Of a stretch of DNA of 64,000 bases, positions 11,166 to 64,000 are shown one piece after another. A program made the translations under genes and the position numbers. Source of the DNA: Macrostomum lignano (lineage: Eukaryota); contig NIVC01001126.1 of NCBI GenBank assembly GCA_002269645.1, positions 186,001 through 250,000 on the forward strand, written 5' to 3'. The notes beneath the pieces are model-generated. The model saw only the letters and a list, made by a program, of their open reading frames with translations. It was not told where the DNA came from and did not search any database. Within the stretch, counting starts at the first letter, position 1; every line of letters starts with the position of its first letter.

Positions 11166-19548
<8,383 letters not shown>

Positions 19549-40100: not shown

Positions 40101-40203
40101 CGTTCCACTTGTTAACTTTGGCTATAGCCTCGAATCGCTGTAGCCATCTGCTGACCTCGGCAGGCACGTCTGTCTCCAGGGGTTCGATTGGAATCGTCGC
40201 CAT
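37147..40203 (-). CDS. Gag-Pol: two CCHC knuckles, protease (DTGS), RT (YQDD), RNase H (TDAS), integrase HHCC
   Basis: Single ORF from the ATG at 40203. It leaves frame just before the integrase core. Confidence 0.92.
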   Translation of the reverse strand: MATIPIEPLETDVPAEVSRWLQRFEAIAKVNKWNDDVLKYAFIAQLGKKAFNLLADAVLPAKPEEKTFDQLKTLLTNETKASKSGLAYRYAFHHMKQESGEDTSAYARRLRQAADNCEFTDLNDRLRVQFVFGLSNKDIVRKLLTEKLADLTWERVTSVASACEAVARGEKQMSSSEILSVKRTDRPRLPETRQNDRKAWQPTGYGKWNQQSHRDQTKCFCCGKDGHRKDVCQHRSKTCLNCGKTGHLKAVCKSNPSRPAQGSRQTVNVRAIEPQKDSSGPVGAQDSIFAVNGSCEEPSRRRITRLLLVNGANLHMIMDTGSVSSFVSLKVYQGLPLKSNLRPTARRFTAYQGDPVRVLGEVTVRVERGGAVANLPLFVVDHRDVEPIYGLDWIAELEPELYVAITQGGNADTTEERQSSRMSPVDTVKVSLSIRPGAKPVFCKPRPIPYGIQEDVKNELRRMESEGQLEKVQSSEWATPIVCVRKQSGSIRICGDYKITLNPVLEDMVSTTPSIDEVMSRLGRARKFSTLDLTNAYLQVSVDAETSQMQTWSTPFGLFRPTALAFGVKQAPAIFQSHMDKLLLNLDGVISYQDDILIWGQGQTDHDKRLNTVMKILENNGLRINADKSVLNKSSIRFLGYEISADGIRPLKEKVEAIAGLKEPSDLKQLQAFLGMVDFYGRCIPNLATLKESLTNLTRSGVRWTWGRQEQKAFNTIKERLLNAGLLKSFDPADNIILTTDASPVGLGAVLEQSSGPVLFISKTLTQAERNYAQIEREALAIVWAVKRLHKYLLGRKFVLRTDHHPLKFLFNPGKALSTVAAARLQRWAITLMEYDYVIECKRSEEIPVADALSRLNNSAAESEQFDVNSIQDSLLDIPVDKQRLRRTSMLDQEMRRLFALVKHGWTAQGIKELPTYARTRDELVIENGLLYRGIRLLIPQEERQRVLPLLHDGHIGADKMKSVARQCVWWPGIDADVTRHTKQCVACQTNKDHGASIQWASWPEESEKCARRLRWTV

Positions 40204-40812
40204 CCTCGTCACCAGTGTTGATTCTGAAGGCACAGACACTATAACACCAGTTTTGATGTAGCCTATAGCTAACTCGGTAATTTCTTAAGTGCTCCAGTTG
40301 AGCAGCTCTCACTATCACTTTTTATTTATTGTGGCCTTAGAACGAGGCACCGCTCATTCAAGTTGTACTGTAATGCTAGTGGCGGTCATGCCATAGATAA
40401 AAGTCTATATCAAATTAATACATCTAACATTTATTGTATTTAAATTTGAGGAGGCGACATCCGAATGGTGAGCTTCTATCTCTGTGTAGAAAGCGAGAAA
40501 GCGAGATGGGGGCTCGTGATTGGCCAGGGCCGTCCTGAGCCCTCACTCTTCCTCAGTTAAGCCTTAACCGTTGGGCTAGGACCTCTTCAATGGACCCCAT
40601 CACAGCAATTGTTCAACAAAGCTATTAAACAATAGCTCATATTTAAAAAGTGCGTGGTACGCTCGTACTTACCTCCTACAATCAGAAGCGTGTTAAAAGT
40701 TTCCACTTTGAAACCTGGTCAGGTCAACTTTTCTCAGACCTCAGCCAGAAATTACGCAATTCACACCACGTCTTGAGCTTGTCATCTGAACCGTGGGTGA
40801 TGCAAATTGGTT

Positions 40813-42590
40813 TGAGACACCTGGTCACTGCACCAGTGCAAGACACCTGGTCACTGCACCAGTGCAAGACACCTGGTCACTGCACCAGTGCAAGACACCT
40901 GGTCACTGCACCAGTACAATACACCTGGTCACTGCACCAGTGCAAGACACCTGGTCACTGCACCAGTGGAAGACACCTGGTCACTGCACCAGTGCAAGAC
41001 ACCTGGTCACTGCACCAGTACAAGACACCTGGTCACTACACCAGTGCAAGACACCTGGTCACTGCACCAGTGCAAGACACCTGGTCACTGCACAAGAGCA
41101 AGACACCTGGTCACTGCACCAGTACAAGACACCTGGTCACTGCACCAGTACAATACACCTGGTCACTGCACCAGTACAAGACACCTGGTCACTGCACCAG
41201 TGCAAAACACCTGGTCACTGCACCAGTGCAAGACACCTGGTCACTGCACCAGTGCAAGACACCTGGTCACTACACAAGAGCAAGACACCTGGTCACTGCA
41301 CCAGTGCAAGACACCTGGTCACTGCACCAGTGGAAGACACCTGGTCACTGCACCAGTGCAAGACACCTGGTCACTGCACCAGTACAAGACACCTGGTCAC
41401 TACACCAGTGCAAGACACCTGGTCACTGCACCAGTGCAAGACACCTGGTCACTGCACCAAAGCAAGACACCTGGTCACTGCACCAGTACAATACACCTGG
41501 TCACTGCACCAGTACAAGACACCTGGTCACTGCACCAGTGCAAAACACCTGGTCACTGCACCAGTGCAAGACACCTGGTCACTGCACCAGTGCAAGACAC
41601 CTGGTCACTGCACCAAAGCAAGACACCTGGTCACTGCACCAAAGCAAGACACCTGGTCACTGCACCAGTACAATACACCTGGTCACTGCACCAGTACAAG
41701 ACACCTGGTCACTGCACCAGTGCAAGACACCTGGTCACTGCACCAGTGCAAGACACCTGGTCACTGCACCAAAGCAAGACACCTGGTCACTGCACCAAAG
41801 CAAGACACCTGGTCACTGCACCAGTGCAAGACACCTGGTCACTGCACCAAAGCAAGACACCTGGTCACTGCACCAAAGCAAGACACCTGGTCACTGCACC
41901 AAAGCAAGACACCTGGTCACTGCACCAAAGCAAGACACCTGGTCACTGCACCAAAGCAAGACACCTGGTCACTGCACCAAAGCAAGACACCTAGTCACTG
42001 CACCAAAGCAAGACACCTAGTCACTGCACCAAAGCAAAACACCTGGTCACTGCACCAAAGCAAAACACCTGGTCACTGCACCAAAGCAAGACACCTGGTC
42101 ACTGCACCAAAGCAAGACACCTGGTCACTGCACCAAAGCAAGACACCTGGTCACTGCACCAAAGCAAGACACCTGGTCACTGCACCAAAGCAAGACACCT
42201 GGTCACTGCACCAAAGCAAGACACCTGGTCACTGCGCCAAAGCAAGACACCTGGTCACTGCACCAGAGCAAGACACCTGGTCACTGCACCAAAGCAAGAC
42301 ACCTGGTCACTGCGCCAAAGCAAGACACCTGGTCACTGCGCCAAAGCAAGACACCTGGTCACTGCACCAAAGCAAGACACCTGGTCACTGCGCCAAAGCA
42401 AGACACCTGGTCACTGCGCCAAAGCAAGACACCTGGTCACTGCGCCAAAGCAAGACACCTAGTCACTGCACCAGAGCAAGACACCTGGTCACTGCACCAA
42501 AGCAAGACACCTGGTCACTGCGCCAAAGCAAGACACCTGGTCACTGCACCAAAGCAAGACACCTGGTCACTGCACCAAAGCAAGACACCT
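40813..42590. repeat. 26-bp minisatellite (gacacctggtcactgcaccagtgcaa)n grading into an ...accaaagcaa variant
   Basis: About 68 units. Source of three spurious ORFs. Confidence 0.95.
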
Positions 42591-43144
42591 GTTCAATGCA
42601 CCAAAGCAAAACGCCTAAGCAACAATCTGAAAATCACTGCAAGTTTAAACCACAATGTCAAAGTTTTTCTCATTCCAGAGATGAACTTTTGGATTAATTT
42701 TTATTCGGATTTTCTGACGGTTTTCTATAGCTCACGTATATCTTAGTTTGTTTAACTGGATTGTTTCCAAGAAATTCTACACATATTTGAACATGCGATT
42801 TGTAAGCTTTTCTCTGTAGCCTTGAACGCAGAATCAGCCTGCATACAACATTGTTTTTATCCAGCCCCACGCATAGTCAGTATATAACAATATATATGTT
42901 TGTAAATTAATTAATAGTCGTTAATAGTTCATTAAAGTAATGGTAATAGTTTATAGTAAGTTTATATTTAATAGACTAGCAAGAAAACGGGTTAACCAAT
43001 TGTTACGGGCTAATGTCTGGGTTTGTCTACTGATAAGTAGAAAGTATAGAGTATGGCGTGACAAGCTTGGTTAGCGGGCAAAGAAATTCCGTCATGCGAC
43101 AGGGCAGAACGTAAGTAAAGGTTCTGTTGGGAGCACGAGACTTT

Positions 43145-43710
43145 CTCGCAGGAGGGTTTCCTGCAGGAGGGTTTACCACAGGAGAGTTTACCACAGGAGG
43201 GTTTCCCCGCAGGAAGGATTCCCACAGGAATTTTTCCCGCAGGGGATTCCCACAGGAAAGATTCTCGCAGGAGAGATTCCCGTAGGAGGGATTCCCGCAG
43301 GAGGGATTCCAGCAGGAGGTTTTACTACAGGAGGGTTTCCCCGCAGGAGAGATTCCCGCAGGAGGGATTCCCGTAGGAGAGATTCCCGCAGGAGGGATTC
43401 CCATAGGAGGTTTTACTACAAGATGGTTTCGCGCAAGAGAAATTCCCACCGAAGGGTTTCCCGCAGGAAGGATTCCTGCAGGAGTGATTCTCGCAGTAGA
43501 GATTCTCGCAGGAGGGATTCCCGCAGGAGGGTTTCCCGCAAGAGGAATTCCCATAGGAGGGATTCCAGCAGGAGGGTTTACCACAGGAGGGTTTCCCACA
43601 GGAAGGATTCCCACAGGAGGGTTTACCGCAGGAAGGATTCCCACAGGAGGGTTTCCCGCAGGAGTGTTTCCCGCAAGAGGAATTCCCATAGGAGGGATTC
43701 CCACAGGAAC
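43145..43710. repeat. Degenerate 15-bp minisatellite (attcccgcaggaggg)n
   Basis: Read directly; it lies downstream of the channel gene. Confidence 0.9.
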
Positions 43711-43880
43711 CATTTTTTGTTTCTTTGCTACGCTCGACTTTCGCATCGATGCTTTGCATTTATCAGAATAAATATCTTAGTAAATGTGACTATTACAAAT
43801 ACAAGCAAAATTGCAAATGAGTAGATCAATAATAATACATGTATTAAAATCAATATTTTTTTCTGGTCATGCAGTCACCA

Positions 43881-46800
43881 CTAGGCTGATGCCGTAAAAT
43901 CGTTTAACTCTTGCTGCTGAGCGCTCGTCTGCTCCGCTCTCCTATCAAACTGCTGCATCTGTCTCACCCGCAGCCGGTGATGAAGCGCCACTAGGAGGCT
44001 GGACAGCAGTTCAATGAGCTCGCACACGGTCAGAACTGAGACTCCGGACCACAGACCCAAGGCTCCTGCGATTGTATTGTTATATAAGAAACATGTTAGG
44101 CCACTCATTTAAAGTTTCTTGTCAAATACACTTCAGTCTACTTTCTATTGGGCATATATAATGCACACGGATTTTTAATTCTATTGAATGCGTCAAAAAA
44201 TGATGCTGTTATGCCAGGTTTATCGCTTGTCGCTCCGCCTAATGGCTCTTCAGTGGCTGGCGCGATATACAACGAGTGCAGAGACTGCGGGTGAAGCTTC
44301 ATTCCGCATCACTTTGAAATGACATTAAAACTCTTGTGTCTTTCTTTAGTAAAGGCAGAAGGGTTGCTGTGTGCACCCTGGCGCACTTTAAGCGACATAG
44401 GCACACAACCGGCGAGAGGCATTGCTGCCCATTCCGCCGACTCCCCTGAGCAGGCACACAAGCGCGCGGATACGTACGCAGTCACACACTCACACAGGAG
44501 TGTACAGCGGCCCTAACTATATTTATCGTTAGGCCCTCAAGGGGTTGGCCCTCAAGGCCGTTAATTGCACGAGCAGAGCCAGCCGAGATTCCAATTCAGC
44601 CTCATATTAATGTCAAGGACTACTCAAGTAGAAGGACTGGAAACTAAGATTCTTAGAAAAAGTTACGGAGGCTGGTTTTCGCCGAAAAATGCACTACGGA
44701 GATAGGAAGTTTTCACTTTTTTCATATCAAAATTGTTATTGCTTTCGATAGGAGGCAGACCCAGTGTTCATCTTTTGATATGTTCTGTTTTTCTTATTGC
44801 TCTATCGATATTCATAATTCTTTTTGTTTAGAAAATTAGCATTTTATGTTAATTTTTCATTCTACATGGCACAGCTCGGCTCTTTGGTTTTATGAATCTA
44901 TTCTATCGATCTCTGTTACACATATTGTTACACAGTCAGCTGAGAATGATAAAATACATTCATAAAACAATGAGCCGGGCCCGGGCCGCTGGTACATCAG
45001 AGGGCCCCCTGCCCTCGTATTCAGCCAGAGCTGCATTTTGCAAAAGTCTCCGTTGATCCTTGACCGACTCACCGCCCAAGTCAGCCATGAGGTTGGTGGC
45101 TGTATAAGCCGGCTCCTCCGTGATCTCATCTCCGAACTCATCGGAGGCTGACACTGTCAGTTTCAACAGCCGATTCTCCAGCTTCTCCAACAGATCCGTC
45201 AGGTGAGTCACCTGGTCATCTGTTCGCTCTACATCGCTAAGATGAGAGAACCGCTTGGCCCTCAGGTAGACATAGTAGATGCTGGCGATGCCCCTGGACA
45301 TCATGTAGTTGTTGGGGAAGGCCCAGTCCTGCAGGTGGCTCACCAGAAACTCCATCGCAGTCTCCGGCCGCAGCTTCGGCCAGGGCGAGGTGGCCAGCCG
45401 GATTTTGTAGCCGCGAACTTCGCACGGAGGCGGGCAGAATCTCCGGGCCTCGAGCTCGTAAGAGTACAGCTGGCGCAGCTGCCTGGAGTGGCACTGCTCC
45501 GTCTGATGCACCTGCTGCGGCTCCGAGGTGTTGAAGCAGCCGGGGTGGCCCGCCAGGTCCGCGGGGATCGGCAGGAAGGAGGGCAGGCAGCCACAGTTGG
45601 CGAAGAAGCGGCGCACTTTGAAGGCGTTGAGGCAGTCCTCCTGCCGGGCTGCCGGGAACTGCAGCGACTGGGAGACCGGGCCTCTGCGGGGGGACATGGG
45701 GAGTGCTGGGATCTGTGCTGGGATCTGTGCTGGGATCTGTGCTGGGATCTGTGCTGGGATCTGTGCTGGGATCTGTGCTGGGATCTGTGCTGGGATCTGT
45801 GCTGGGATCTGTGCTGGGATCTGTGCTGGTATCTGTGCTGGTATCTGTGCTGGGATCTGTGCTGGGATCTGTGCTGGTATCTGTGCTGGGATCTGTGCTG
45901 GGATCTGTGCTGGGATCTGTGCTGGGATCTGTGCTGGGATCTGTGCTGGGATCTGTGCTGGGATCTGTGCTGGGATCTGTGCTGGTATCTGTGCTGGTAT
46001 CTGTGCTGGGATCTGTGCTGGGATCTGTGCTGGGATCTGTGCTGGGATCTGTGCTGGGATCTGTGCTGGGATCTGGGGCACAGGGATCTGGGGCACAGGG
46101 ATCTGGGGCACAGGGATCTGGGGCACAGGGATCTGGGGCACAGGGATCTGGGGCACAGGGATCTGGGGCACAGGGATCTGGGGCACAGGGATCTGGGGCA
46201 CAGGGATCTGGGGCACAGGGATCTGGGGCACAGGGATCTGGGGCACAGGGATCTAGGACCTGCACTCCCAGCAACCAGCGAGTGACCACCCAAATCCGGA
46301 CTGCACCTTGAGCTGCTCAACTTCTCCAGGACTCGTTTCAGTTCCGCAATCTTGGCTGTCCAATTGGTCGCTGAGAACATTCGGCTGAGGTCGAGGCTCT
46401 CGCTGCAGTGTATGAGGTTGCATTTATTGGTACCTTTAACTCGAATTAGCAATTGATGACTTGGTAACTTAGTAGCTGAGCTACCCACATTCATCGCTGC
46501 ACCACTCTCATCTTTGTCACTCTCATCCTTGTCACTCTCATCTTTGTCACTCTCATCCTTGTCACTCTCATCCTTGTCACTCTCATCTTTGTCCCTCTCA
46601 TCCTTGTCACTCTCATCTTTGTCGCTCTCATCCTTGTCGCTCTCATCCTTGTCACTCTCATCCTTGTCACTCTCATCTTTGTCCCTCTCATCCTTGTCAC
46701 TCTCATCTTTGTCGCTCTCATCCTTGTCACTCTCATCTTTGTCGCTCTCATCCTTGTCACTCTCATCCTTGTCACTCTCATCTTTGTCACTCGCCCTGTC

Positions 46801-49800
46801 ACTCGCCCTGTCACTCGTTTCTTGCTTATTCAATGTATCACTCCGGATCGTCACTCTCATACTGACAGTCCATCAAAAATCAGCCTCACTTAAGCTGCAC
46901 CCAGGTGTTATTCCAATTCGGCAACAAATAGGTGATCGGCCTCGTTTCGCTGACGCACTCTCGATGTGGCGGTTTTGAGTAGCGAGTAGTCTTGCTGTAG
47001 CGGAGCCGCAGGTCCGTGTGCTGGCCGGGGCTGAGGTTAATGATGTCCGATGGCCAGGGGTACTCAGAACGGGGCACCACCAGCACCTTCGTGGGTGGTT
47101 GTTTTTTTGAGGGGCTGGCTTATATGAAGTAATTAGTGGAGCTATTTAGACGCAACTTTATAACAAGATTTACGAATTCATTTTACTAGTCACTCCATCG
47201 TCACTCTACTAGTCACTCCACCATCACTCTACTAGTCACTCCACCATCACTCTACTAGTCACTCCACCATCACTCTACTAGTCACTCCACCATCACTCTA
47301 CTAGTCACTCCACCATCACTCTACTAGTCACTCCACCATCACTCTACTAGTCACTCCACCATCACTCTACTAGTCACTCCACCATCACACATGCACACAG
47401 CCCCATGCCTCTAAAAATAAAAGGTCACTCCATCGTCACTATGCTAGTCACTCCAGCGTCAAAATTTACTATTCACTTCACGGTCACTCTCCTATAAGTC
47501 ACTCGCGCATTCTTACGCGCATGGCGCTGCTGTCGCTGTCAAAGTCGCCTGAGCCCGGTCGCAGGATGCGCGCCAGCTTGCTGGCGTTGTCGAAGCGCCT
47601 GCCGACGGAGTCGGTGGCGTCGGTGAAGAAGCCGACACTCAGGCGGGCCTCGGCAGGTCGCAGCAGCCGCCACGGATCCTCGGAGGCCACCGGGCGGAAG
47701 CGGTGGCACAGGCCGAGCCGCGGGTGCAGCAGCGTCTGGAAGTCGGCGGCAGAGCAGCGGCGGCCGGCGAATCGGCAGCCCGAGAGGCCGGCGGCCACGT
47801 CGCTGCCGAACTGCCGCCACAGAAGGCCGCGGCCGGCGCCGGCCGATACGGACTCGGACACCGCGGTCACGGCGCGGTCTGCGGTACGGCGGAGGCTTTG
47901 GGGTGTCAGTGGATGCATTGGGGTGTCAGTGGATGCATTGGGGTGTCAGTGAATGCATTAGGGTGTCAGTGGATGCATTGGGGTGTCAGTGGATGCATTG
48001 GAGTGTCAGTGAATGCATTGGGGTGTCAGTGGATGCATTGGAGTGTCAGTGAATGCATTGGGGTGTCAGTGGATGCATTGGGGTGTCAGTGGATGTATTC
48101 GGGTGTCAGCGAAGGCGTGAAGATGTCTGTAGATGATTTATGAGCAAAGCGACTACATTAAGCCTCTCTGGCAAGCTCCTGGATGCAAAATTAACGTTGA
48201 ATAGCAGTCTGTTGCCAGGGACTCACAGCATGGCTTGACGCTGCAAATTCTGAATTGAGCATATCCCCGCCGATTGGACTTCGAGAAGCAGGAAGGCACG
48301 GCTGAGGCTGATAGAAGACTGCGGCGGCTGTTTTTAAGCAAATACGTCAATTTTAACTACTAGTAGTAGAAATAGTAACATTTTTGTTAATTTTTTTTCC
48401 AAAAGATTTTCCTTACAAATAAGTTCCATTCTTCCATAGATAATCCACCATGACTTTGGCTTGACGGCAATGGTTGTGGTTCACCTTCAGCTCGAGATCC
48501 GGGGTTTCAACGTGAACTCGAATGACGTCTGCGAAATTCACGTTTGTAAAGTTTGTTTAGTTTCAAGCATGTCGAAAAGATTTCTAGTAGACAAATTGAT
48601 CAGGTCAAATTCAAGGATATCATTCAATCTAACTGGGATTTTCGGCCTTCAAAGTCGGCTCCAGCTGGTCCCAAGCGATGCAGTCGCGTCCCAAGTTGTC
48701 GGCGCTCTGACTTCCGGTGTACCGACCGGAGTGGCTCCTGTCTGGCTGGCTGCCGCGACTTGACGAAGGAACGCAGTCATAGTTAGGTGACATTGCTGCG
48801 GATTTAGTTGCCAGGGTAGCGAAAGAAGTTTTTCAAGGTGAATCACCAAGCTTAAAATGGAATCGAGGCAATTGCAGCGGCCCTGACTTTCTCTCATAGG
48901 TGAGAATGCACGAGCCAAAATGTGCCCTAGTGGTATCATGTGCCAAAGCCTACGCTCGATTCGGAATACTGGCTTATAACTACCGAAGTTATATTATTAG
49001 ACGACTTTTTCTATCAACACTTACAAACTCATTTCACCAGTCACTCCACCGTCACTCTACTAGTCACTCAACCGTCACTCTACTAGTCACTCCCAGTCAC
49101 TTTGCTAGTCACTCCACAGTCTCTCTACTAGTTCACTCTACTAGTCACTCAACCGTCACTCTACTGGTCACCTCCAGTCACTTTGCTAGTCACTCCACAG
49201 TCACTCTACTAGTCACTCCACCGTCACTCTACTAGTCTCTCGAGCGTCATTTTACGGTAGCCGCAGCCCAGTGGTCTGGCGCGGCGCTCTGGTGTGCCAG
49301 CGGCCCAGGCTCGATTCCCAGTGCAGTCACATTAATTTGGGGCTAAATTGGAATATCGGCTTGGCTCTGCTCGTGCAATTAACGGCCTTGAGGGCCAACC
49401 CCCAAGACGCAGTGAAGTGTACATGCCTAACGATAAATAAAGTTAGGACCGCTGTACACTTCTGCGTGAGTGTGTGCCTGTGCGTATGACTGCGTACGTA
49501 TCCGCGCGCTTGTGTGCCTGCTCAGGGGAAGTCGGCGGAATGGGCAGTAATGCCTCTCGCCGGTTGTGTGACAATGTCGCTCAAAGTGCGCCAGGGTGCA
49601 CACAACCCCTGGAGGAACGAAATTAAGACAATAATGTGCTTATCGTGCTACTCACGACAGTAAGGCACGTTGCAGTAAGCCGCTGAAAGCTGACCAAGTT
49701 CATCATGGTAGAAGCAGTACGGCCCGTCGTTGAAACTGGAAATCGAACTCCGGAACGCCAAGATTAGCGGCTTTGGTGCTGAAATCAGTGTTAATAACGA

Positions 49801-52800
49801 TTGAGCAGCTCACCTGAATGTCTAACCCTAACATGAAAATGAAAATGAAAATGAAAAAAGAAACTTTCACTCCACAACTATATAAAATAGAACAGAGTCA
49901 CATGCGGTAACCTTCACTGCCCCAGATCAAATGCAATCATTTATTTTCTGTGAAAAAAAGATTTTCTCTTATCTCCGCAGTGTATTTTTTCCCGGAAATC
50001 GGCCGCTTAAAAATTAAACGATTTTTTAGTTCTACCAGGTACGTCCTGTGATACTACAGTGGTCGTTGATCCTGTGATACTACAGTGGTCCTTGAACCTG
50101 TGATACTACAGAGGTCCTTTTGATCCTGTGATACTACAGTGGTCCTTGAACCTGTGATACTACAGTTGTGCTTTTGATCCTGTGATACTACAGTGGTCCT
50201 TGAACCTGTGATACTACAGTGGTCCTTGAACCTGTGATACTACAGTGGTCCTTGATCCTGTGATACTACAGTGGTTCTTGAACCTGTGATACTACAGTGG
50301 TCCTTGAACCTGTGATACTACAGTGGTCCTTTTGATCCTGTGATACTACAGTGGTCCTTTTGATCCTGTGATACTACAGTGGTCCTTGAACCTGTGATAC
50401 TACAGTGGTCCTTGATCCTGTGATACTACAGTGGTTCTTGAACCTGTGATACTACAGTGGTCCTTGAACCTGTGATACTACAGTGGTCCTTTTGATCCTG
50501 TGATACTACAGTGGTCCTTCAACCTGTGATACTACAGTGGTCCTTGAAACTACAATGGTCCTTGAATCACGTGCGTGGTGTGAACCGCGTCACTTGGGGC
50601 TAAGATTTACCTTGGAACATAAGCAAGAGTTTCATTTTATCCATGTGGCCTGGTGGTGAATTGCTTGAATTGCAAAGCACTCACCTTCATGCCTCATTTG
50701 ATAGACGCTTAAGTAGCCTCCAACTCCGCCGCACTTTTGCTTATAACCGAAAGGACAAGTTGAGTCGCAATGCTCGTCTCCTTGAGGACGGTTCCACAGA
50801 AATTTCCTGGTGCAATGGCAACCCCTCGGGCTCAGTCCGATGTAGCTGAAGTTGCTATTGAAGCAGCACTGGGCGCAGTTGCTGGTCGACCAGCGCATGG
50901 CGTAATCAATTCTGTCCGCATTGGGTGTCTCACCTGGCTTATAGATTCGTTCGTACATTGAGCCGCATATGGAGAATGCGGAGCCCACCGTGTCATTGTG
51001 GAAACAGCCCCTGTACCTGTGGAATGGATCTGGAAAGATTTGTATAGATTTTACTTTTCTACTCATTATGGTCACTAGAGAGTCACCACCAGTCACCACA
51101 CTGAAGGCTCTCACAAGCTGCCACCAGTCACCACACTGAAGGCTCTCACAAGCTGCCACCAGTCACCACACTGAAGGCTCTCACAAGCTGCCACCACACT
51201 GAAGGCTCTCACAAGCTGCCACCACACTGAAGGCTCTCACTCGCTGCCACCACACTGAAGGCTCTCACTCGCTGCCACCACACTGAAGGCTCTCACAAGC
51301 TGCCACCTTCCGCAGGTCAGTCAGCGGCAGTCCTCGCGGCTGTCGGCACCTTCTGTCGTTCTCCGAGAAATTCATCGCTAGGATGCGGTCAGTGATGGAG
51401 CGCCCAGCCTCCCCCAGCGCCCTGGCAGCGCGGTTCCAGCTGATGCACTGCCGGTGCGTGACGTAGGGCCGGAAGCGGCTCAGGTTCAGGGGCTGCGTGG
51501 GTTCCAGAGGCTCAAATAGGATGCCATCTGAGTACACAGGGACTGCGGACTGGTTGCCTGAGTACTCCTCCCCTGAGTGAGTCGTGCGGCAGAGGCTCGG
51601 GTCCGCTGAAACGGTTTGGGGTCAGCTGGGGTCAGCAGGTGATGAGTCCCTACAGCAGACACTAACCAGTAGCACACAGACACTCACCGGTAGCACAGAG
51701 ACACTCACCGGTAGCACAGAGACACTCACCGGTAGCACGCAGACACTCACCGGTAGCACAAAGACACTCACTGGTAGCATGTAGACACTCACCGGTAGCA
51801 CACAGACACTCACTGGTAGCATGCAGACACTCACCGGTAGCATGCAGACACTCACCGGTAGCACACAGACACTCACCGGTAGCACACAGACACTCACCGG
51901 TAGCACGCAGACACTCACCGGTAGCACAGAGACACTCACCGGTAGCACACAGACACTCACTGGTAGCACACAGACACTCACCGGTAGCATGCAGACACTC
52001 ACCGGTAGCACGTAGACACTCACTGGTAGCACACAGACACTCACTGGTAGCACACAGACACTCAACGGTAGCACACAGACACTCACCGGTAGCACACAGA
52101 CACTCACCGGTAGCACGCAGACACTCACCGGTAGCACACAGACACTCACCGGTAGCACGCAGACACTCACCGGTAGCACACAGACACTCACCGGTAGCAC
52201 GCAGACACTCACCGGTAGCACACAGACACTCACCGGTAGCACAAAGACACTCACCGGTAGCACACAGACACTCACCGGTAGCACAGAGACACTCACCGGT
52301 AGCACAGAGACGCAAATTTAATTCAACTGCAAGCCATGTTCACACAGTTTTCTATTGGTTGCAATGTGAAGCAGCTTTCTTGCTTGCACAAAATAAAAAA
52401 CTGAAAGCAAAAAAGCGATTTCAACAAGATCTTAACTTGATGCTTATCAAAAAATTAATTTGAATCGTCGAATTTCTATTTTGATTCAAATTGGATAGGC
52501 CTGTGAAGATTGCAGGGTATAAATTGATAGAATCAATTAAAAAACTGTTTGATTTCTCGTATAGCATGGCAGACTGACTTCAGAAACTACTAAAAAGCCC
52601 TAAACATGAAGTAGCGAAGTAGCTGTTTAAAATAAAGTGCTGAAAAAAGGAAAAGGAATGCAGTATTTTCTAAACAATAGAAGTGATAAATAAGGACAGA
52701 GCGAAAACGTGATAAAACACAAGATATTCATAATATCAATAGTTTTTATAGATTTTGTAAGCTTTCAAGATGAACCAGTATTTAGTTTAAAGAAATCAAA

Positions 52801-55800
52801 TTTTAACTTTTGCCCAAATACAAAATCTAAAAAAACCGTAAAAATAACTTTAAAACACACTAGTTTGGTATGAGCTCAAAAAGATTTGATTTAATTGACA
52901 CTTGAATTTTAATTTCAAACTTAACAACTGCGTACTTTTTATTCACGTAATTTGTGTCTTTTTATTAAATACACCCCTGCCCCAATTGGGCCAGATGTGC
53001 AACCGACAGCTCAGCCGCAGCTATTGCGCGGCGCATCTGAAGGCTGCGTACGGCTGTTCAGTCCAAGGACTGGGGGGGGGGGTCTCCACACACACCCTCA
53101 ATTACCCCAGCTAATGCTGGCACCCTTTTACAGCTGGGTGAACTGAAGCAATGCAGAGTCTTGCTCAAGGACACAAATTGTTCCGAGTGGGTCGAGAATC
53201 GAACCCCCGACCTTTCAGTCGTGAGTCTGAAGCTCTAACCACTAGGCAAAACCCAATTAGTAAGCTAAATTTATTCATAGTACATCAATTAACTGTAATA
53301 ACTGTATAATATTTACCGTAACTAAATTAAAGGTCATATTGTTCCATTTCAGACTAAGAACTCCGACTCTCGCTCTTCACAGTCTTAATATATAATATTG
53401 TAGCTTACATGCTACATGAGGTTATTCAAATAAGCAGAATTCTGATTGACGATAGAACATTGCCAGCGTACCTCCAACGAATATAGGGATTGTAATAATA
53501 GTAGGCACCTCCGGTGGGAAGACAACTCTGACAGTTATTAAACCACCATCCGCCATTGCCATAGTTGGAGACACACGATCCAGGGCTCTGATCGTTGTCC
53601 ATAGTGGCAAACTTCATGCCTTTGTGAAAGTTCAGCGAGTCGCCGGTTGCGTTGGAGCTGGCTGTCAGCTGTGAAAGGAACGTCATGGTGTTGCTCGTGC
53701 TGGCATCGCCAACTGAGAATCCGGAGTATTCGTCAACGTAGGAAACGCCTGTAGTGGACACGGTCTCCACTCTCAGCTTTCTGGGAGTGCTGCCGGTCAG
53801 TTCGTTGATCTTTCTTAGACCTGAAATAAATTCGGCATTCCAGATAGAACAACTACCAGAGCGGTGTGCGAGGATCTATGATCTCTTTCTACCGAGCCCT
53901 GTCACAACAGAACGAACTGGAGTGCTTTATTCATAGGCGAGTTCCGTAGCCCAGTGGTATGGCGCGGCGCTCTGGTGTGCCAGCGGCCCCTCAGGCTTGA
54001 TTCCAAGTGCAGTCAATTTAATTTTGGGGCTAAATTGAAATCTCGGCTTGGCTCTGCTCGTCCAATTAACGGCCTTGAGAGCCAACCCCTAAGGTTAGGA
54101 CCGCTGTACACTCCTGTGTGAGTGTGTGCCTGTGCGTATGACTGCGTACGTATCCTCGCGCTTGTGTGCCTGCTCAGGGGAGTCGGCGGAATGGGCAGTG
54201 ATGCCTCTCGCCGTTCGTGTGACAATGTCGCCTAAAGTGCGCCATAGCTCGTAGGCTCAACCCTTGACAATCTGTCTGATCAACAGAGCCCAGTCTCACC
54301 GAGCCAAACGTCCACTCCGTCTCCAAATCCGTCTTCGTACTCAATCCAGGTCCGGGCGAAGCTCATAGTTAATTGCGAACGACTCAGCATAACGTAGTAC
54401 CCCGGAGTCGGACTGGGCGCTGTAGTAGGATTAGTTGTTGTTAATTCCTCTAAAAATCAGTGCCACTAAGCTAGCAATCCCAGGCATTTTTTTACCTTTC
54501 ACCCTTCGTTAGACGATGCTGCGCGGAGCGGCAGCTGAGAAGTCGGCGTTGTTCGCGACGGAGAACAGGCACACCTGAGCCTCCTCCAGGTAGGCGGTGG
54601 CGGCGCACACGGCCAGACCAGCGGCCGAGCACTGCACAGTGCAGTGCATGTCGCTGCTGCCACGAGCCGATGTTATCAGAGCTGTTGAATTCAGCGACTC
54701 CACCAGGTCAGTCGAGTACTCTGTGGTGTTGCGGCCATGCACTCGGGATTGACAATTGTGACCTGGTACTCCTTGTTCAAAACGAAAAAAATGAGATTCG
54801 TTTAAATTGGCTTACCTGCATCGTCGAGACCGCTGGCTGCTGCGGCGCGAATCGCAGCGCAGATGAACAGTAGAATGGCGCGGTACATTTGTCGGAAGGT
54901 TCAAGTGAGTGAGTTGAGCTTAATTTTCTTTAGACAGGGAGCGCGCCTCCCGAATGAGCGCCTCTATTTATGCCCAACTGATAAACAGCCCCCCCCCGAA
55001 AGCGTGGGAGCCGCCTTCCGACTTGAGTACCTCCATCTCTTGGCAACGTGTGTCGGAAATACACACACACAAACACACACACACACACACACAGTCCCCC
55101 TTCCCTCCATTACTCAAGATTGGCGGTTGTTCCCAGCAACTCTGCTGCGTATTGTCTAAAAACTTTTACCCGTAACCACTGGCAGATTAGGGATGCTGAG
55201 CTGAGTTGTTGACAAGATGGATGTTGTTTCTTCTTCCTACTTTCTCTGATGCATCTTATGATGAAGCCTCAACTTAAACTGCTTACTTTGGGGCAAAGCC
55301 TCCGCTTGAGCATAGACCTCACTGAATTGACTTTACAGAGAAGCCCACAGCAAAAAGCTGCAGAAGTCAGGGAAAAACTGCTCTTGCTAATTGATTTTTA
55401 CCAGGCCTCAGCGCTTACCCTCTCCGCTCTCATCTTTTCGGAGATGAGTTTCTTTAGTTAAGTTTTTTTTCAACTTTTGTATGCTCCGCCTCTCTACATA
55501 GAGGGCTGCCTATGGATTTTTCTTGGAATGAGACAGAATCCTTGGTCTAATCGATGACCGAAGGGATAGAAAGGATTACTCATCAGCAGAGGCTCTATGG
55601 CCCAAGTGCATTTTTTAGGATTTTCACTCATTTGTTTTTATAGTTCGTACCAGGGGTAAATGACTGCAATCCCGTCCGCTGAGAATGTCTATGGTAAAAA
55701 CTGCCATGGTTCAATGCTTTCAGTTGGTTTCACAGCCCGCCGAGAAAGTCTATGGTAGAAACTGGCATGGATCAATCTTTCAGTTGGCTTCACGGTACGC

Positions 55801-56682
55801 CGAGAATGTCTATGGTAAAACCTGGCATGGATCAATGCTTTCAGTTCGTTTCACGGTCCGCCGAGAAAGTCTATGGTAGAAACTGGCATGGATCAATCTT
55901 TCAGTTGGCTTCACGGTACGCCGAGAATGTCTATGGTAAAACCTGGCATGGATCAATGCTTTCAGTTGGTCTCACAGCCCGCCAAGCCGGCTCACAGACT
56001 CTCACTGTGACTCACAGGCACTCACGGTGACACACAAAGACACTCAATGTGACTCACAGACTCTCACTGTGACACACATAGACACTCACTGTGACACACA
56101 CAGGCACTCACAGTAACACTCACCAGTCCCAGTGAACTGCAGCGACTCAACCAGCTCATCCTCAGCCGCCATCACAGCCTCCGACAGAGCCTGTGCTGCA
56201 TCGCTGAAGTGGCCGCTGGATTGATGAGGCGGGAAGCTGCTGGAGTCTGAGATGTCAAACTTGAGCAGCGCCTCAATCAGCGAGTTCTTGTACGGCTTGA
56301 ACCCCGGCCGCTTGTAGGAATGTGAGCTCAGCTCCGTACCGCTCTCCACCTGCCTGCTCAGCCTGCTCATGGTCACGTGATCAGCTGGGCACAGGTAAAT
56401 ATCGGGGAACTGAAATTGCAGATTAGCGGTGACTCCGGTTGTCAAGGGAACGCTGAGATAATGAGCTGCCAGGCAGTACATGTGGTAGGCGAATCCGCAG
56501 TACGTGAGCAGAAGGAAGCTGAGCCACATCATCCTGCCGCAGCGGCTGCTCTGCGACCCCAGGCGGCCCAGGCCGTGAGCAGTCGTGTAGTTGGTGAAGT
56601 GCAGCAGTGACTGCCGCAGTTTTGCGCCATCAGCTGCTGGCGGCGAGCTTTCGGCTCGACAACTTCTGGGGTCTGTCGACAT
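43881..56682 (-). CDS. DEG/ENaC (degenerin/FaNaC-like) sodium channel subunit
   Basis: Core exons: 56682-56124, 47878-47517, 47086-46890, [46402-46307], 45683-45073, 44065-43881, all phase-consistent. Motifs: [11 protein letters not shown]1, [17 protein letters not shown]....[14 protein letters not shown]....LSPG, thumb Cys (DC...CGC...C...C...CPPPC), [30 protein letters not shown] (TM2, GxS filter). Confidence 0.93.
44361..44612 (-). mobile_element. SINE family A, copy 3, inverted and lacking the tRNA head
   Basis: Reverse complement of the body of copy 1 (ggcgcactttaagcgaca...gcagagccagccgagattcc). Confidence 0.7.
45705..46255. repeat. Compound intronic array: 12-bp (ggatctgtgctg)n then 15-bp (atctggggcacaggg)n
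   Basis: Read directly. Confidence 0.95.
46503..46810. repeat. 15-bp intronic array (ctctcatccttgtca)n
   Basis: Read directly. Confidence 0.95.
47185..47390. repeat. 23-bp intronic array (catcactctactagtcactccac)n
   Basis: Read directly; a related array lies at 49040-49240. Confidence 0.9.
47895..48110. repeat. 20-bp intronic array (gggtgtcagtggatgcattg)n
   Basis: Read directly. Confidence 0.9.
48227..51605 (-). CDS. Six exons encoding kringle(N)-WSC-kringle(C)-kringle 2 (384 aa), probably part of the DEG/ENaC mRNA
   Basis: 51605-51297 ([20 protein letters not shown]); 51029-50685 (WSC: YRGCF, CAQCC, YIGL, CHC, CDSTC, CGG, LSVY); 49778-49656 (GPYCFY, YCNVPYC); 48795-48634, 48528-48417 and 48327-48227 ([32 protein letters not shown]). 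The block opens with a phase-1 acceptor and closes with a phase-1 donor. Confidence 0.8.
49040..49240. repeat. Decayed 23-bp array of the same family as 47185-47390
   Basis: ctctactagtcactccaccgtca units. Confidence 0.8.
49261..49605 (+). mobile_element. tRNA-derived SINE, family A, copy 1
   Basis: A-box-like GCCCAGTGG and B-box-like GGCTCGATTCC. Closely similar to 53944-54244. Confidence 0.7.
50050..50550. repeat. 26-29-bp intronic array (cctgtgatactacagtggtccttgaa)n
   Basis: Read directly. Confidence 0.9.
51085..51300. repeat. 28-35-bp intronic array (ccaccagtcaccacactgaaggctctcacaagctg)n
   Basis: Read directly. Its first unit on the minus strand supplies the splice donor of the kringle-N exon. 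Confidence 0.85.
51665..52310. repeat. 21-bp intronic array (gcacacagacactcaccggta)n
   Basis: Read directly. Confidence 0.95.
52975..53248 (-). mobile_element. tRNA-head SINE, family B, with a CORE-like domain
   Basis: The minus strand reads GCCTAGTGGTTAGAGC...GGTTCGATTCTCGACCC, then TGTGTCCTTGAGCAAG...CACCCAGCTGTAAA. Confidence 0.65.
53426..54888 (-). pseudogene. Nested signal peptide-PAN-fibrinogen C-terminal (FReD) gene with one in-frame TAA (54509-54511)
   Basis: Exons 54888-54816 ([19 protein letters not shown]), 54762-54496 (CTVQC...CAATAY...C.L), 54419-54300 ([17 protein letters not shown]) and 53820-53426 ([32 protein letters not shown]) are phase-consistent. It could be a pseudogene, a null allele or a base error. 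Confidence 0.8.
53944..54244 (+). mobile_element. tRNA-derived SINE, family A, copy 2 (in intron 3 of the FReD gene)
   Basis: Collinear with copy 1 over ~300 bp. Confidence 0.7.
55670..55985. repeat. Five ~59-60-bp tandem units (cgccgagaatgtctatggtaaaacctggcatggatcaat...)
   Basis: Two alternating variants form a ~119-bp dimer. Confidence 0.85.
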
Positions 56683-57199
56683 TGGGATTGCAGATCAGAG
56701 CGAACTCAGTTTTCCCCAGAATAATGCATATTTATGTACCCCGAATTCTCATGTGACTTCGACTCCAACCCGAAAACTCGATCAGATCGCTCAGACAAGT
56801 TCGATTGAACTGTAGGCGAAATCGCAGTCAAATTCGCTGCTCCGGGTAAGGCAATTTTGTGTTTTGCCAATGCCACTCGATCGGGCTGTCATCGCAGAGT
56901 CACACGTCCGTCTGTCGCGTGGATTTCCGTTCTAAGCGATTATGCCAGACTTGGGATGCTGCATTCGGCCGATGGCAACTGGCTATTATTTCTGACTGAT
57001 TGATGCAGCAACTGGTCACAGTGAACAGTTGGATACGAGTGCCACACATGAAAGATCAGATAGAAATGAAAAGCCATGAAAATGTTTCGTATTAAAAGTG
57101 CCAATATTGTTCTGCTAAATGATAGATACGAGCGTATAGCAACTTGTTGCTCCTGATTGCGCTGCAATATGGTGTAGTTCATCGTTTTTGAAGGTTCCC

Positions 57200-60100
57200 T
57201 ACTGACGTTGCAGGTGTCTTACTGATGTTGCAGGTGTCTTACTGATGTTGCAGGTGTCTTACTGATGTTGCAGGTGTCTTACTGACGTAGCAGGTGTCTT
57301 ACTGATTTTGCATGCGTCTTACTGATGTTGCATTGTCTTACGTACTGACGTTGCAGGTGTCTTACTGATGTTGCAGGTGTCTTACTGATGTTGCATTGTC
57401 TTACGTACTGACGTTGCAGGTGTCTTACTGATGTTGCAGGTGTCTTACTGATGTTGCAGGTGTCTTACTGATGTTGCATTGTCTTACGTACTGACGTTGC
57501 AGGTGTCTTACTGATGCTGCAGGTGTCTTACTGATGTTGCAGGTGTCTTACGAACTGATGTTGCAGGTGTCTTACGTACTGATGTTGCAGGTGTTTTACT
57601 GATGTTGCAGGTGTCTTACTGATGTTGCAGGTGTCTTACTGATGTTGCATTGTCTTACGTACTGATGTTGCATGTGTCTTACGTACTGATGTTGCAGGTG
57701 TCTTACGTACTGACGTTGCAGGTGTCTTACTGATGTTGCAGGTGTCTTACTGATGTTGCATTGTCTTACGTACTGACGTTGCAGGTGTCTTACTGATGCT
57801 GCAGGTGTCTTACTGATGTTGCAGGTGTCTTACGAACTGATGTTGCAGGTGTCTTACGTACTGATGTTGCAGGTGTCTTACTGATGTTGCAGGTGTCTTA
57901 TTGATGTTGCAGGTGTCTTACTGATGTTGCATGTATCTTACGTACTGATGTTGCAGGTGTTTTACTGACGTTGCAGGTGTCTTACTGATGTTGCAGGTGT
58001 CTTACTGATGTTGCAGGTGTCTTACTGATGTTGCAGGTGTCTTATGTACTGATGTTGCAGGTGTCTTACTGATGTTGCAGGTGTCTTACTGATGTTGCAT
58101 TGTCTTACGTACTGATGTTGCAGGTGTCTTACGTACTGATGTTGCAGGTGTCTTACTGATGTTGCAGGTGTCTTATGTACTGATGTTGCATGTGTCTTAC
58201 TGATGCTGCAAGTGTTTTACTGATGTTGCCGGTGTCTTACTGATGCTGCAGGTGTCTTACTGATGTTGCAGGTGTCTTACTGATGTTGCAGGTGTCTTAC
58301 TGATGTTGCAGGTGTCTTACTGATGTTGCAGGTGTCTTACTGATGTTGCAGGTGTCTTATGTACTGATGTTGCAGGTGTCTTACTGATGCTGCAGGTGTC
58401 TTACTGATGTTGCAGGTGTCTTACGAACTGATGTTGCAGGTGTCTTACGTACTGATGTTGCAGGTGTTTTACTGATGTTGCAGGTGTCTTACTGATGTTG
58501 CAGGTGTCTTACTGATGTTGCATTGTCTTACGTACTGATGTTGCATGTGTCTTACGTACTGATGTTGCAGGTGTCTTACGTACTGACGTTGCAGGTGTCT
58601 TACTGATGCTGCAGGTGTCTTACTGATGTTGCAGGTGTCTTACGAACTGATGTTGCAGGTGTCTTACGTACTGATGTTGCAGGTGTCTTACTGATGTTGC
58701 AGGTGTCTTACTGATGTTGCAGGTGTCTTACTGATGTTGCATGTATCTTACGTACTGATGTTGCAGGTGTTTTACTGACGTTGCAGGTGTCTTACTGATG
58801 TTGCAGGTGTCTTACTGATGTTGCAGGTGTCTTACTGATGTTGCAGGTGTCTTATGTACTGATGTTGCAGGTGTCTTACTGATGTTGCAGGTGTCTTACT
58901 GATGTTGCATTGTCTTACGTACTGATGTTGCAGGTGTCTTACGTACTGATGTTGCAGGTGTCTTACTGATGTTGCAGGTGTCTTATGTACTGATGTTGCA
59001 TGTGTCTTACTGATGCTGCAAGTGTCTTACTGATGTTGCCGGTGTCTTACTGATGCTGCAGGTGTCTTACTGATGTTGCAGGTGTCTTACTGATGTTGCA
59101 GATGTCTTACTGATGTTGCAGGTGTCTTACTGATGTTGCAGGTGTCTTATGTACTGATGTTGCAGGTGTCTTACTGATGTTGCAGGTGTCTTACTGATGT
59201 TGCATTGTCTTACGTACTGATGTTGCAGGTGTCTTACGTACTGATGTTGCAGGTGTCTTACTGATGTTGCAGGTGTCTTATGTACTGATGTTGCATGTGT
59301 CTTACTGATGCTGCAGGTGTCTTACTGATGTTGCAGGTGTCTTACTGATGTTGCAGGTGTCTTACTGATGTTGCAGGTGTCTTACGTACTGATGTTGCAG
59401 GTGTCTTACTGATGTTGCAGGTGTCTTACTGATGCTGCAGGTGTCTTACTGATGTTGCAGGTGTCTTACTGATGTTGCAGGTGTCTTACGTACTGATGTT
59501 GCAGGTGTCTTACTGATGCTGCAGGTGTCTTACTGATGTTGCATGTGTCTTACGTACTGACGTTGCAGGTGTCTTACTGATGTTGCAGGTGTCTTACTGA
59601 TGTTGCATGTCTTACTGATGTTGCAGGTGTCTTACTGACGTGCAGGTGTCTTACTGATGTTGCATGTCTTACTGATGTTGCATGTCTTACGTACTGATGT
59701 TGCAGGTGTCTTACGTACTGTTGCAGGTGTCTTACTGATGTTGCATGTCTTACTGATGTTGCAGGTGTCTTACTGATGTTGCAGGTGTCTTACTGATGTT
59801 GCAGGTGTCTTACTGATGTTGCAGGTGTCTTACGTACTGATGTTGCAGGTGTCTTACTGATGTTGCAGGTGTCTTACTGATGTTGCATTGTCTTACGTAC
59901 TGACGTTGCAGGTGTCTTACTGATGCTGCAGGTGTCTTACTGATGTTGCAGGTGTCTTACTGATGTTGCATGTGTCTTACTGATGTTGCATGTGTCTTAC
60001 GTACTGACGTTGCAGGTGTCTTACTGATGTTGCAGGTGTCTTACTGATGTTGCATTGTCTTACGTACTGACGTTGCAGGTGTCTTACTGATGCTGCAGGT

Positions 60101-63100: not shown

Positions 63101-64000
63101 CAGGTGACTTACTGATGTTGCAGGTGTCTTACTGATGCTGCAAGTGTCTTACTGATGTTGCAGGTGTCTTACTGATGTTGCATTGTCTTACGTACTGATG
63201 TTGCAGGTGTCTTACTGATGCTGCAGGTGTCTTACTGATGTTGCAGGTGTCTTACTGATGTTGCAGGTGTCTTACTGATGTTGCCGGTGTCTTACTGATG
63301 TTGCAGGTGTCTTACTGATGTTGCATTGTCTTACGTACTGATGTTGCAGGTGTCTTACTGATGCTGCAGGTGTCTTACTGATGTTGCAGGTGTCTTACTG
63401 ATGTTGCCGGTGTTGCAGGTGTCTGATGTACTGACGTTGCAAGTGTCTTACTGATGTTGCAGGTGTCTTACTGATGCTGCAGGTGTCTTACGTACTGGTG
63501 TTGCAGGTGTCTTACTGATGTTGCAGGTGTCTTACTGATGCTGCAGGTGTCTTACTGATGTTGCCGGTGTCTTACTGATGTTGCAGGTGTCTTACTGATG
63601 TTGCATTGTCTTACTGAAGTGTGCTGCAGGTGTCTTACTGATGTTGCAGGTGTCTTACGTACTGGTGTTGCAGGTGTCTTACTGATGCTGCAAGTGTCTT
63701 ACTGATGTTGCAGGTGTCTTACTGATGCTGCAGGTGTCTTACGTACTGGTGTTGCAGGTGTCTTACTGATGTTGCAGGTGTCTTACTGATGCTGCAAGTG
63801 TCTTATTGATGCTGCAGGTGTTTTACTGATGTTGCATTGTCTTACGTACTGATGTTGCAGGTGTCTTACTGATGCTGCAGGTGTCTTACTGATGTTGCAG
63901 GTGTCTTACGTACTGATGTTGCAGGTGTCTTACTGATGTTGCAGGTGTCTTACTGATGTTGCATTGTCTTACGTACTGATGTTGCAGGTGTCTTACGTAC
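57200..64000. repeat. Satellite array, 20-bp unit (tgatgttgcaggtgtcttac) with 24-bp +gtac variants, running off the window end
   Basis: At least 6.8 kb. An 810-bp higher-order repeat is shown by variants at 57931/58741 and 58201/59011. Confidence 0.97.

Follow-up and report, generated by a model that had tools for sequence, protein, structure and literature searches.

The sequence analysed here, referred to as the window, is a stretch of 64,000 nucleotides from the flatworm Macrostomum lignano (GenBank assembly GCA_002269645.1, contig NIVC01001126.1, positions 186,001 to 250,000 of the forward strand). On its minus strand, at 56682-43881, it carries a gene of 12 exons for a channel of the DEG/ENaC family. 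Six of the exons encode the channel itself and are labelled E1-E6. The other six, K1-K6, lie between E1 and E2 and encode a module of 384 residues with 22 Cys, made up of two kringle-like units, the first of which holds a nested WSC domain. All exons were rebuilt base by base, and all channel and module coordinates refer to the minus strand (Table 1). It is probable that the whole interval is a single DEG/ENaC gene and that its exons 2-7 code for a module inserted into the finger domain of the channel. The weight for this architecture appears to rest more on the evidence from paralogues than on the matching phases of the exons.

Table 1. Exons of the channel (E) and of the inserted module (K), with the gene that lies in the E1>K1 intron. 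Positions are those of the window; phases are given as start-end.
Feature	Position	Strand	Size	Phase	Content
E1	56682-56124	-		ends in phase 1	ATG, HG motif YTTAHGLGR, first transmembrane helix (TM1), FPDIYLCP strand, proximal finger
K1	51605-51297	-	309 nt	1-1	N-terminal part of kringle-like unit 1, Cys1-Cys3
K2	51029-50685	-	345 nt	1-1	WSC domain exon, 10 Cys, nested in kringle-like unit 1
K3	49778-49656	-	123 nt	1-1	C-terminal part of kringle-like unit 1, GPYCFY...YCNVPYC, Cys4-Cys6
K4	48795-48634	-	162 nt	1-1	Start of kringle-like unit 2, DC...RYTGSQS...CIAW
K5	48528-48417	-	112 nt	1-2	Middle of kringle-like unit 2, ETPD...NHCRQA
K6	48327-48227	-	101 nt	2-1	End of kringle-like unit 2, PSCF...RICSVKPC; donor TGC T/gtgagt (slash, splice site)
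E2	47878-47517	-		1-0	Distal finger, GCRFAGRRC motif onward
E3	47086-46890	-		0-2	
E4	46402-46307	-	96 nt	2-2	Same length in all mapped paralogues
E5	45683-45073	-		2-1	Cys-rich thumb, palm, segment before the second transmembrane helix (TM2)
E6	44065-43881	-			TM2 with G-V-S filter motif, C-terminus, TAG stop
FReD gene	54888-53426	-	290 aa		Intact, four exons, in the E1>K1 intron; Fibrinogen_C 1.7e-24 (Pfam); outside the channel product

Splicing of all 12 exons gives a frame that is open, without a stop, and a product of 1053 aa. This agrees with the channel of ~1,050 aa proposed in the preliminary description of the locus, and the product aligns over its full length with the 1052-aa M. lignano protein BOX15_Mlig007204g1. 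Direct splicing of E1 to E2 is also in frame and yields an intact product of 669 aa. The junctions reported earlier were recovered as described: E1 ends in phase 1 (ACT G/gtgagt), E2 begins in phase 1 (cag/AC CGC), and between them six same-strand exons at 51605-48227 chain in frame and add exactly 1152 nt, all with AG acceptors and GT donors. The K1 donor (GCT T/gtgaga, at 51297) lies within the first unit of a 28-bp minisatellite. The minisatellite-bearing gap of ~350 bp noted between K6 and E2 is an intron of 348 bp with 10.6 copies of a 20-bp unit at 47898-48109, and read-through beyond the K6 donor does meet a stop at about 48153. The phase match of the K exons with E1 and E2 is real but less remarkable than had been implied, because shuffled extracellular modules are typically encoded by exons that both start and end in phase 1. 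A TATA-like sequence (cataaatat) is found ~50 bp 5' of the ATG in E1, and E1 is 40% identical to exon 1 of BOX15_Mlig007204g1.

The translation has the hallmarks of a DEG/ENaC channel: two transmembrane helices, an HG motif, an FPxxxxC strand and a G-V-S filter in TM2. The ASC domain (PF00858) scores 156.6 bits on the 669-aa short form (E 1.4e-45, against a cut-off of 23.6 bits), and the channel matches in the PDB are FaNaC, ASIC, ENaC, BASIC and PPK, the closest solved structures by sequence being the FMRFamide-gated channels 7yvb and 8on7 (E 1e-14 to 2e-13). The protein is predicted to be a DEG/ENaC channel, for which a trimeric assembly, Na+ selectivity and amiloride sensitivity would be expected. 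The E1/E2 junction falls after residue 186, with the module between FPDIYLCP and GCRFAGRRC. Since residues 22-103 align to FaNaC1 4-86 and residues 219-353 to FaNaC1 171-303, the junction lies in the alpha1-alpha3 finger, which bears out the earlier placement of the insert in the hypervariable finger between the FPxxxxC strand and the CxFxGxxC motif. In FaNaC1 it is alpha1-alpha3a (V87-F144) that make up the peptide pocket, whose residues are not alignable even within the FaNaCs (PMC11026163). The outer corner of the channel is the most divergent part of the superfamily, is important for gating throughout, and has also been cited as a proposed site of matrix tethering (PMC11026163).

Homologue searches with the channel returned only M. 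lignano proteins. The 1053-aa product and BOX15_Mlig007204g1, in which Pfam finds both WSC and ASC, align end to end with 701 bits (E = 0) and 37% identity. Within the module the identity is 41% and all 22 Cys are invariant; for single exons it reaches 47% (K1) and 64% (K3). An exhaustive phmmer search with BOX15_Mlig007204g1 against 1.84 billion representative proteins gave 17 matches at E <= 1e-30, all but one from M. lignano (16 proteins); the other was an unrelated multi-WSC protein from Diplonema. Further members spanning channel, module and channel were found in this search (working labels P0005, P0006, P0007, P0009, P0010, P0016, P0017 and P0018); among the GenBank models in their clusters are Mlig026586g1, Mlig034226g1, Mlig006398g1, Mlig013355g1 and Mlig002193g1. 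A word-seeded homologue search with the module, alone or as a two-sequence alignment that included a verbatim segment of Mlig007204g1, found no match, which is an effect of the word index and carries no biological weight.

The GenBank annotation of M. lignano is derived from RNA only, by StringTie on RNA-seq, BLAT-mapped Trinity transcripts, TACO and TransDecoder, with trans-splice and poly(A) reads defining where genes end (PMC5730564). RNA-derived models that read from E1 through the module into the channel are Mlig007204g1 (1052 aa), Mlig026586g1 (1091 aa), Mlig006398g1 (1033 aa), Mlig034226g1 and Mlig013355g1; under working labels, the RNA-based models spanning channel, module and channel are P0153, P0006, P0157 (the model of locus L003, below), P0007 and P0171. 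Mlig029271g1 and Mlig002193g1 contain part of the module and then continue into the channel. RNA-based models that contain the K6>E2 junction are P0001 (the same as Mlig007204g1), P0002, P0153 and P0157. Where RNA-based models of the subfamily cover the region of the module, none was found without it.

The arrangement seen in the window recurs at the genomic loci of the paralogues. At the locus of Mlig006398g1 (L003), 12 GT-AG exons follow the order and phases of the window, and the E1>K1 and K6>E2 introns are 520 bp each. The locus of Mlig007204g1 (L001) likewise keeps the order and phases, with one extra intron inside E1, and its flanking introns are 341 bp (E1b>K1) and 335 bp (K6>E2). At 335-520 bp, the flanking introns are too short to accommodate a promoter for a separate gene, or a signal-peptide or other first exon. 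At the Mlig029271 locus (L002), tblastn and six-frame reading gave E1, then K1-K6, then E2 and the exons after it, ordered as in the window; the RNA model of this locus begins inside K6 and crosses into E2. The phases of the six K exons (1-1, 1-1, 1-1, 1-1, 1-2, 2-1) are common to the window, L001, L003 and a further locus, L004, and the length of K3 is identical in all mapped paralogues. That the module exons are part of the channel mRNA appears strongly supported for the subfamily. The contrary case, in which the K exons have a 5' exon and a poly(A) site of their own and never join the channel, is contradicted for the family by the RNA-derived models of the paralogues. The window gene is one of a subfamily that numbers at least six to eight paralogues in M. 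lignano; these have the architecture in common and, where mapped, the exon phases too.

Two further observations were made at the paralogous loci. At L001 the coding exon K5 contains a DNA transposon of 6.7 kb (13065-19788 of that locus) with terminal inverted repeats of ~57 bp and a TGTACA target duplication. The Mlig007204g1 model skips it exactly, with ends that are not GT/AG. This confirms that the model came from RNA and points to the mRNA of a transposon-free allele; stated more broadly, either the expressed allele lacks the transposon or it is removed from the RNA. At L002, a second, inverted DEG/ENaC copy of the subfamily (17708-22060, minus strand) is placed tail-to-tail with Mlig029271, at a distance of ~4 kb from the 3' end of that gene, and is preceded by a K6-like exon (..GHCSIPLC). 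This copy indicates a local duplication of these genes.

The module had been described as a kringle, a WSC domain and a second kringle in a row. Both domain types are kept here, the kringles as a weak assignment; the order is not, as it runs from the N-terminal part of kringle 1 through the WSC domain to the C-terminal part of kringle 1, followed by kringle 2. In Pfam the spliced product gave a strong ASC match, a WSC match below threshold and no kringle. The WSC domain (PF01822) in K2 of the window scores 21.6 bits (E 2.6e-4), below the Pfam cut-off of 27.8. The homologous exon is above the cut-off in BOX15_Mlig007204g1 (39.1 bits) and in the paralogue model P0153 (41.4 bits), and the WSC segment of BOX15_Mlig007204g1 was matched by many multi-WSC proteins in the exhaustive protein search. 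For the kringle (PF00051) there was no match in the window module at E <= 0.1; in paralogues, 15.6-24.2 bits were obtained on about the first 30 positions of unit 2, below the cut-off of 34.3.

The kringle character of unit 2 is clearer from profiles. A profile of K4-K6 built from six sequences has C, Y.G, C..W, N.CR, P.C and C....C as its invariant columns, and in these the signatures of kringles can be recognised (Y-x-G, C-x-x-W, N-x-C-R, P-x-C and C-x-I-x-x-C). Searched against the PDB, this profile matched 78 chains at E < 10, and all 60 of those shown were kringle proteins. The best match was kringle 2 of tPA (E 5.9e-5), and HGF, plasminogen, ROR1/2, prothrombin, apo(a), uPA and neurotrypsin were also matched. 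In unit 1 the first three Cys lie in the K1 segments CRTT..GEEYSG, CISW and RCRQP, and the last three are carried by K3. With the WSC domain taken out, unit 1 aligned with unit 2 at a probability of 80% in hhalign (E 1.3e-5), and its six-sequence profile matched only the neurotrypsin and plasminogen kringles in the PDB, with E about 1. The two units are kringle-like but highly divergent, at the edge of the family, and the name kringle is a weak assignment. UniProt names several members of the subfamily 'Kringle domain-containing'. An apparent likeness of unit 1 to artificial alphaRep/HEAT repeats, the top PDB matches of a three-sequence profile, was judged spurious, as a sum of weak matches to a helical segment (AARALGEAG...ILAM), and was gone with six sequences. 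A MAFFT alignment of the window exon fragments with BOX15_Mlig007204g1, which hinted at an internal repeat, was also discarded, as it had misplaced kringle-2 fragments onto kringle 1.

An AlphaFold2 model of the BOX15_Mlig007204g1 module, built on a five-sequence alignment, had a predicted local distance difference test score (pLDDT) of 57, with values of 30-65 in the kringle regions. The top Foldseek match of this low-confidence model was the WSC domain of yeast Wsc1 (7pz2; E 0.02, probability 0.98, target TM-score 0.54). The other matches, to fragments of the RNA polymerase beta subunit, were judged to be noise. The disulfide pattern of kringles is 1-6, 2-4, 3-5. A link between Cys3 and Cys4, which was taken to be the textbook topology of the canonical kringle and is at odds with that pattern, would hold the ends of an inserted domain together and might in this way suit the insertion of a WSC domain.

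The E1>K1 intron of the window is 4.5 kb long and contains a complete fibrinogen-related (FReD) gene on the same strand (Table 1). Its first exon, at 54888-54816, encodes a signal peptide and ends in phase 1 with the donor gtaag, so that the earlier statement that no signal-peptide exon for the K exons was found does not hold in the strict sense. A TATA-like ataaatag is found near 54970 and an AATAAA near 53270. Neither L001 nor L003 has the FReD gene in its own, short E1>K1 intron, which makes the gene a secondary insertion. Two ab initio UniProt models, P0003 and P0039, fuse E1 to FReD exons; these fusions are probably artefacts. P0039 differs at a few residues, from which it follows that a second, near-identical copy of the locus exists.

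Minisatellites with units of 12-28 bp occur in almost every intron of the channel gene (43143-57487), for example at 55993-56119, 51094-51307, 47898-48109, 47184-47388, 46503-46792 and 45703-46254. Most start at the 5' splice site or within ~130 nt of it; in the K3>K4 intron the array starts ~400 nt downstream. For E1 and K1 the donor itself is part of the first repeat unit, and the context of the K1 donor, GCAGCTT/GTGAGAG, is repeated ~7 times. Just upstream of K1, at 51656-52311, is a minisatellite of 31 units of 21 bp, each with a consensus donor (CCG/GTGAGT), and just upstream of this array, at about 52350, there is a CCAAT-like box. The 21-bp array could be the mark of a former or cryptic exon end. 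A dispersed repeat of ~350 bp, possibly of the short interspersed element (SINE) or miniature inverted-repeat transposable element (MITE) type, is present in three copies that are 85-94% identical (49250-49620, 44368-44613 in inverted orientation, and 53944-54244), all of them in introns of the channel or FReD gene.

Downstream of the 3' end of the channel gene lies the coding region of a Ty3/gypsy-type long terminal repeat (LTR) retrotransposon (35171-40239, minus strand). It consists of an open reading frame (ORF) of 1030 aa, with protease, reverse transcriptase, RNase H and the integrase zinc-binding domain, and an adjoining ORF of 295 aa with the integrase core; the split of the integrase over two ORFs suggests a frameshift. 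Long tandem arrays and strong base skew are found at 40650-42700 (plus strand), 57200-64000 and 1-2000, with a GC skew of about 0.27 and an AT skew of about -0.43 at 58-64 kb and an AT skew of 0.58 in the first 2 kb. ARAGORN found no tRNA in the window.

Other readings of the K exons were weighed against that of a single channel gene. The K exons could form a separate nested gene for a secreted kringle/WSC protein, with a coincidental phase match to the channel, that starts at the FReD signal-peptide exon, at an unrecognised 5' exon or at a spliced-leader site and stops near 48153. The window itself offers some of what such a gene would need: K1 can be joined in frame to the FReD signal-peptide exon, giving an open product that ends 25 codons after K6, and the minisatellite upstream of K1 supplies donor-like units. 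Given how common phase 1-1 exons are for extracellular modules, a phase-1 host intron would be matched about one time in three, and spliced-leader trans-splicing is widespread in M. lignano (PMC5730564). At L001 and L003, however, the module begins 341-520 bp from E1 with no FReD or signal-peptide exon between them, and the RNA-derived models of these loci read E1>K1...K6>E2 as one ORF. The arrangement and the phases have been kept through 60% protein divergence, and no stand-alone module protein was present among the matches of the exhaustive search. We consider a separate gene very unlikely. The possibility that the open exon chain is made up of chance ORF fragments and splice-like sites in a repeat-rich intron, for which the abundance of minisatellites with donor-like units could be cited, can be given practically no credence: each K exon has a homologue in the same order and phase at independent loci, and the 22 invariant Cys and the 41% identity refute it.

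The architecture could also be real for the family, with the window copy being silent, decaying, or expressed mainly as the 669-aa short form or as transcripts truncated at the FReD gene. Several observations do weigh against our interpretation of the window gene, some of them along these lines. No transcript-derived model of the window locus was among the matches, which for this locus held nothing but the ab initio models P0003 and P0039; for several paralogues such a model exists. The E1>K1 intron, enlarged to 4.5 kb, harbours an entire gene on the same strand, and this nested gene, which has a TATA-like box and its own polyadenylation signal, could truncate host transcripts. Minisatellites adjoin the donors in almost every intron, the K1 donor is itself multiplied, and E1 can be spliced to E2 in frame. 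As to the module, its WSC domain is below the Pfam threshold in the window, no Pfam kringle is matched there, and the low-confidence structural model leaves the geometry of the nested domain unconfirmed. Finally, the ratio of nonsynonymous to synonymous substitution rates (dN/dS), calculated on the near-identical pair L003/L004, draws on only 6 substitutions in the module, too few to show constraint. Against a silent or differently expressed copy, all 12 exons of the window gene are open, its splice sites are canonical, and the 22 family-invariant Cys and the HG, FPxxxxC and GxS motifs are intact. The RNA-based family models that cover the region all carry the module, and the missing model is weak evidence, as the annotation pipeline dropped transcripts that overlapped repeats or were of low expression (PMC5730564). 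A copy that is silent or makes another product is therefore improbable in our estimate, and a single 12-exon channel gene remains the explanation that we prefer.

For this channel gene, the most likely origin of the module is the shuffling of phase 1-1 exons into a phase-1 intron, followed by inheritance through the expansion of the paralogues. Each subunit of the trimer would then display a disulfide-rich binding module of ~43 kDa on the finger, at the outer upper corner of the extracellular domain, a part that in FaNaC, ENaC and ASIC links the binding of ligands to gating. Because WSC domains bind carbohydrate and kringles bind proteins, we propose that the module probably serves to dock the channel. 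Its partner would be a glycan or a protein, and could belong to the matrix or be a macromolecular ligand. If the module is bound by such a partner, or mechanically pulled, the pore could be modulated or gated via the finger-thumb pathway. On this basis the module may be a working sensor arm, that of a tethered mechanoreceptor or of a glycan- or protein-gated channel, and the finger a recurrent docking site for shuffled adhesive domains; we offer this only as a tentative suggestion.

Full-text searches for DEG/ENaC channels or degenerins with kringle, WSC or Macrostomum, which did not cover all journals, returned nothing relevant. The architecture is present in public databases as uncharacterised proteins (the A0A267-series, 'WSC domain-containing protein') and is apparently undescribed. 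What seems to be new is a lineage-restricted subfamily with an unusual insert, a WSC domain nested in a kringle; finger inserts as such are known from other DEG/ENaCs. The stimuli that gate DEG/ENaC channels are protons, peptides, proteases, bile acids and force, and the finger of these channels is both the most variable element and the one that drives gating. How force is transferred to the mechanosensitive members through a supposed matrix tether is a long-standing question, for which a finger that encodes adhesion and carbohydrate-binding modules would be a natural test case. It is also a genetically tractable one, transgenesis and RNA interference being established in M. lignano. The nesting of a WSC domain in a kringle is in itself an unusual topology of domain insertion. 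Parallel inserts in amphioxus and hemichordates (below) suggest that exon shuffling into the finger intron is a general route, of which we found no description in the searchable literature. If the sensor-arm proposal is true, it would represent a general and overlooked way of diversifying DEG/ENaC gating.

Of the systems with which the window protein can be compared, the closest are its M. lignano paralogues, which have the same architecture and invariant Cys and are transcript-derived; the mapped members Mlig007204g1, Mlig006398g1 and Mlig013355g1 share exon order and phases. Their accessions include PAA47210.1 and PAA85180.1 (Mlig026586g1 and Mlig034226g1) and PAA86857.1 and PAA79168.1 (Mlig006398g1 and Mlig013355g1), and they are annotated only as hypothetical or 'WSC domain-containing'. 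They differ from the window gene in having short introns around the module, without a FReD gene, and in sequence, with 30-41% identity to the window protein, which is therefore the product of a distinct paralogue. The FaNaCs (7yvb, 8on7) are also trimeric DEG/ENaC channels, in which the alpha1-alpha3 finger is the ligand pocket that drives gating, and the window insert is placed in the same segment. FaNaC binds a tetrapeptide in a small pocket of short helices, however, and has no inserted domains, and its finger residues cannot be aligned with those of the flatworm channel.

The best-known metazoan pairing of kringle and WSC domains is that of Kremen1/2, and Kremen1 was the top PDB sequence match of the whole-module profile, a weak one (E 0.6). 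Kremen has a tandem kringle-WSC-CUB arrangement in a single-pass protein, whereas here the WSC domain is nested in a kringle, a second kringle follows, and the whole is part of a channel with two transmembrane helices. Pfam found no CUB domain in the window product or in the paralogues tested. On sequence grounds, the similarity of the module to Kremen appears too weak to claim descent. Yeast Wsc1, whose WSC domain was the top structural match of the low-confidence module model, is a mechanosensor, but a single-pass one of the fungal cell wall and not a channel. Among DEG/ENaC channels, degenerins of the MEC-4/MEC-10 type have extra Cys-rich extracellular segments, and gating via matrix links has been proposed for them. 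The tether idea for DEG/ENaC channels is also cited elsewhere (PMC11026163). Unlike the window module, the nematode degenerin inserts are not kringle or WSC domains.

A closer parallel in position is provided by deuterostome DEG/ENaCs, in which large adhesive inserts separate the FPxVTVCN strand from the CxYxxxxC motif, with kringles in two of the three proteins. In predicted proteins, the insert has two F5/8C domains and one kringle in Branchiostoma (XP_078661500.1), four LDLa, five PAN and five kringle domains in Ptychodera flava (XP_070544098.1), and eight LDLa domains in Saccoglossus (XP_077865926.1). Mapping of the Saccoglossus exons was lost after residue 117, the model not being an exact match to the assembly used. 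In Branchiostoma (CM033058.1, locus L006 2878-6727), the entire C-terminal half of an ASIC-like channel is encoded in a single exon of 3850 nt, together with the two F5/8C domains and the kringle, which is canonical; because all of these share one exon, the amphioxus insert cannot be an artefact of the gene model. The deuterostome inserts differ from that of the flatworm in their strong Pfam kringles, their other partner domains, the lack of WSC, their ASIC-like cores and their much larger size. The flatworm, amphioxus and hemichordate inserts are evidently independent acquisitions in the same region of the channel.

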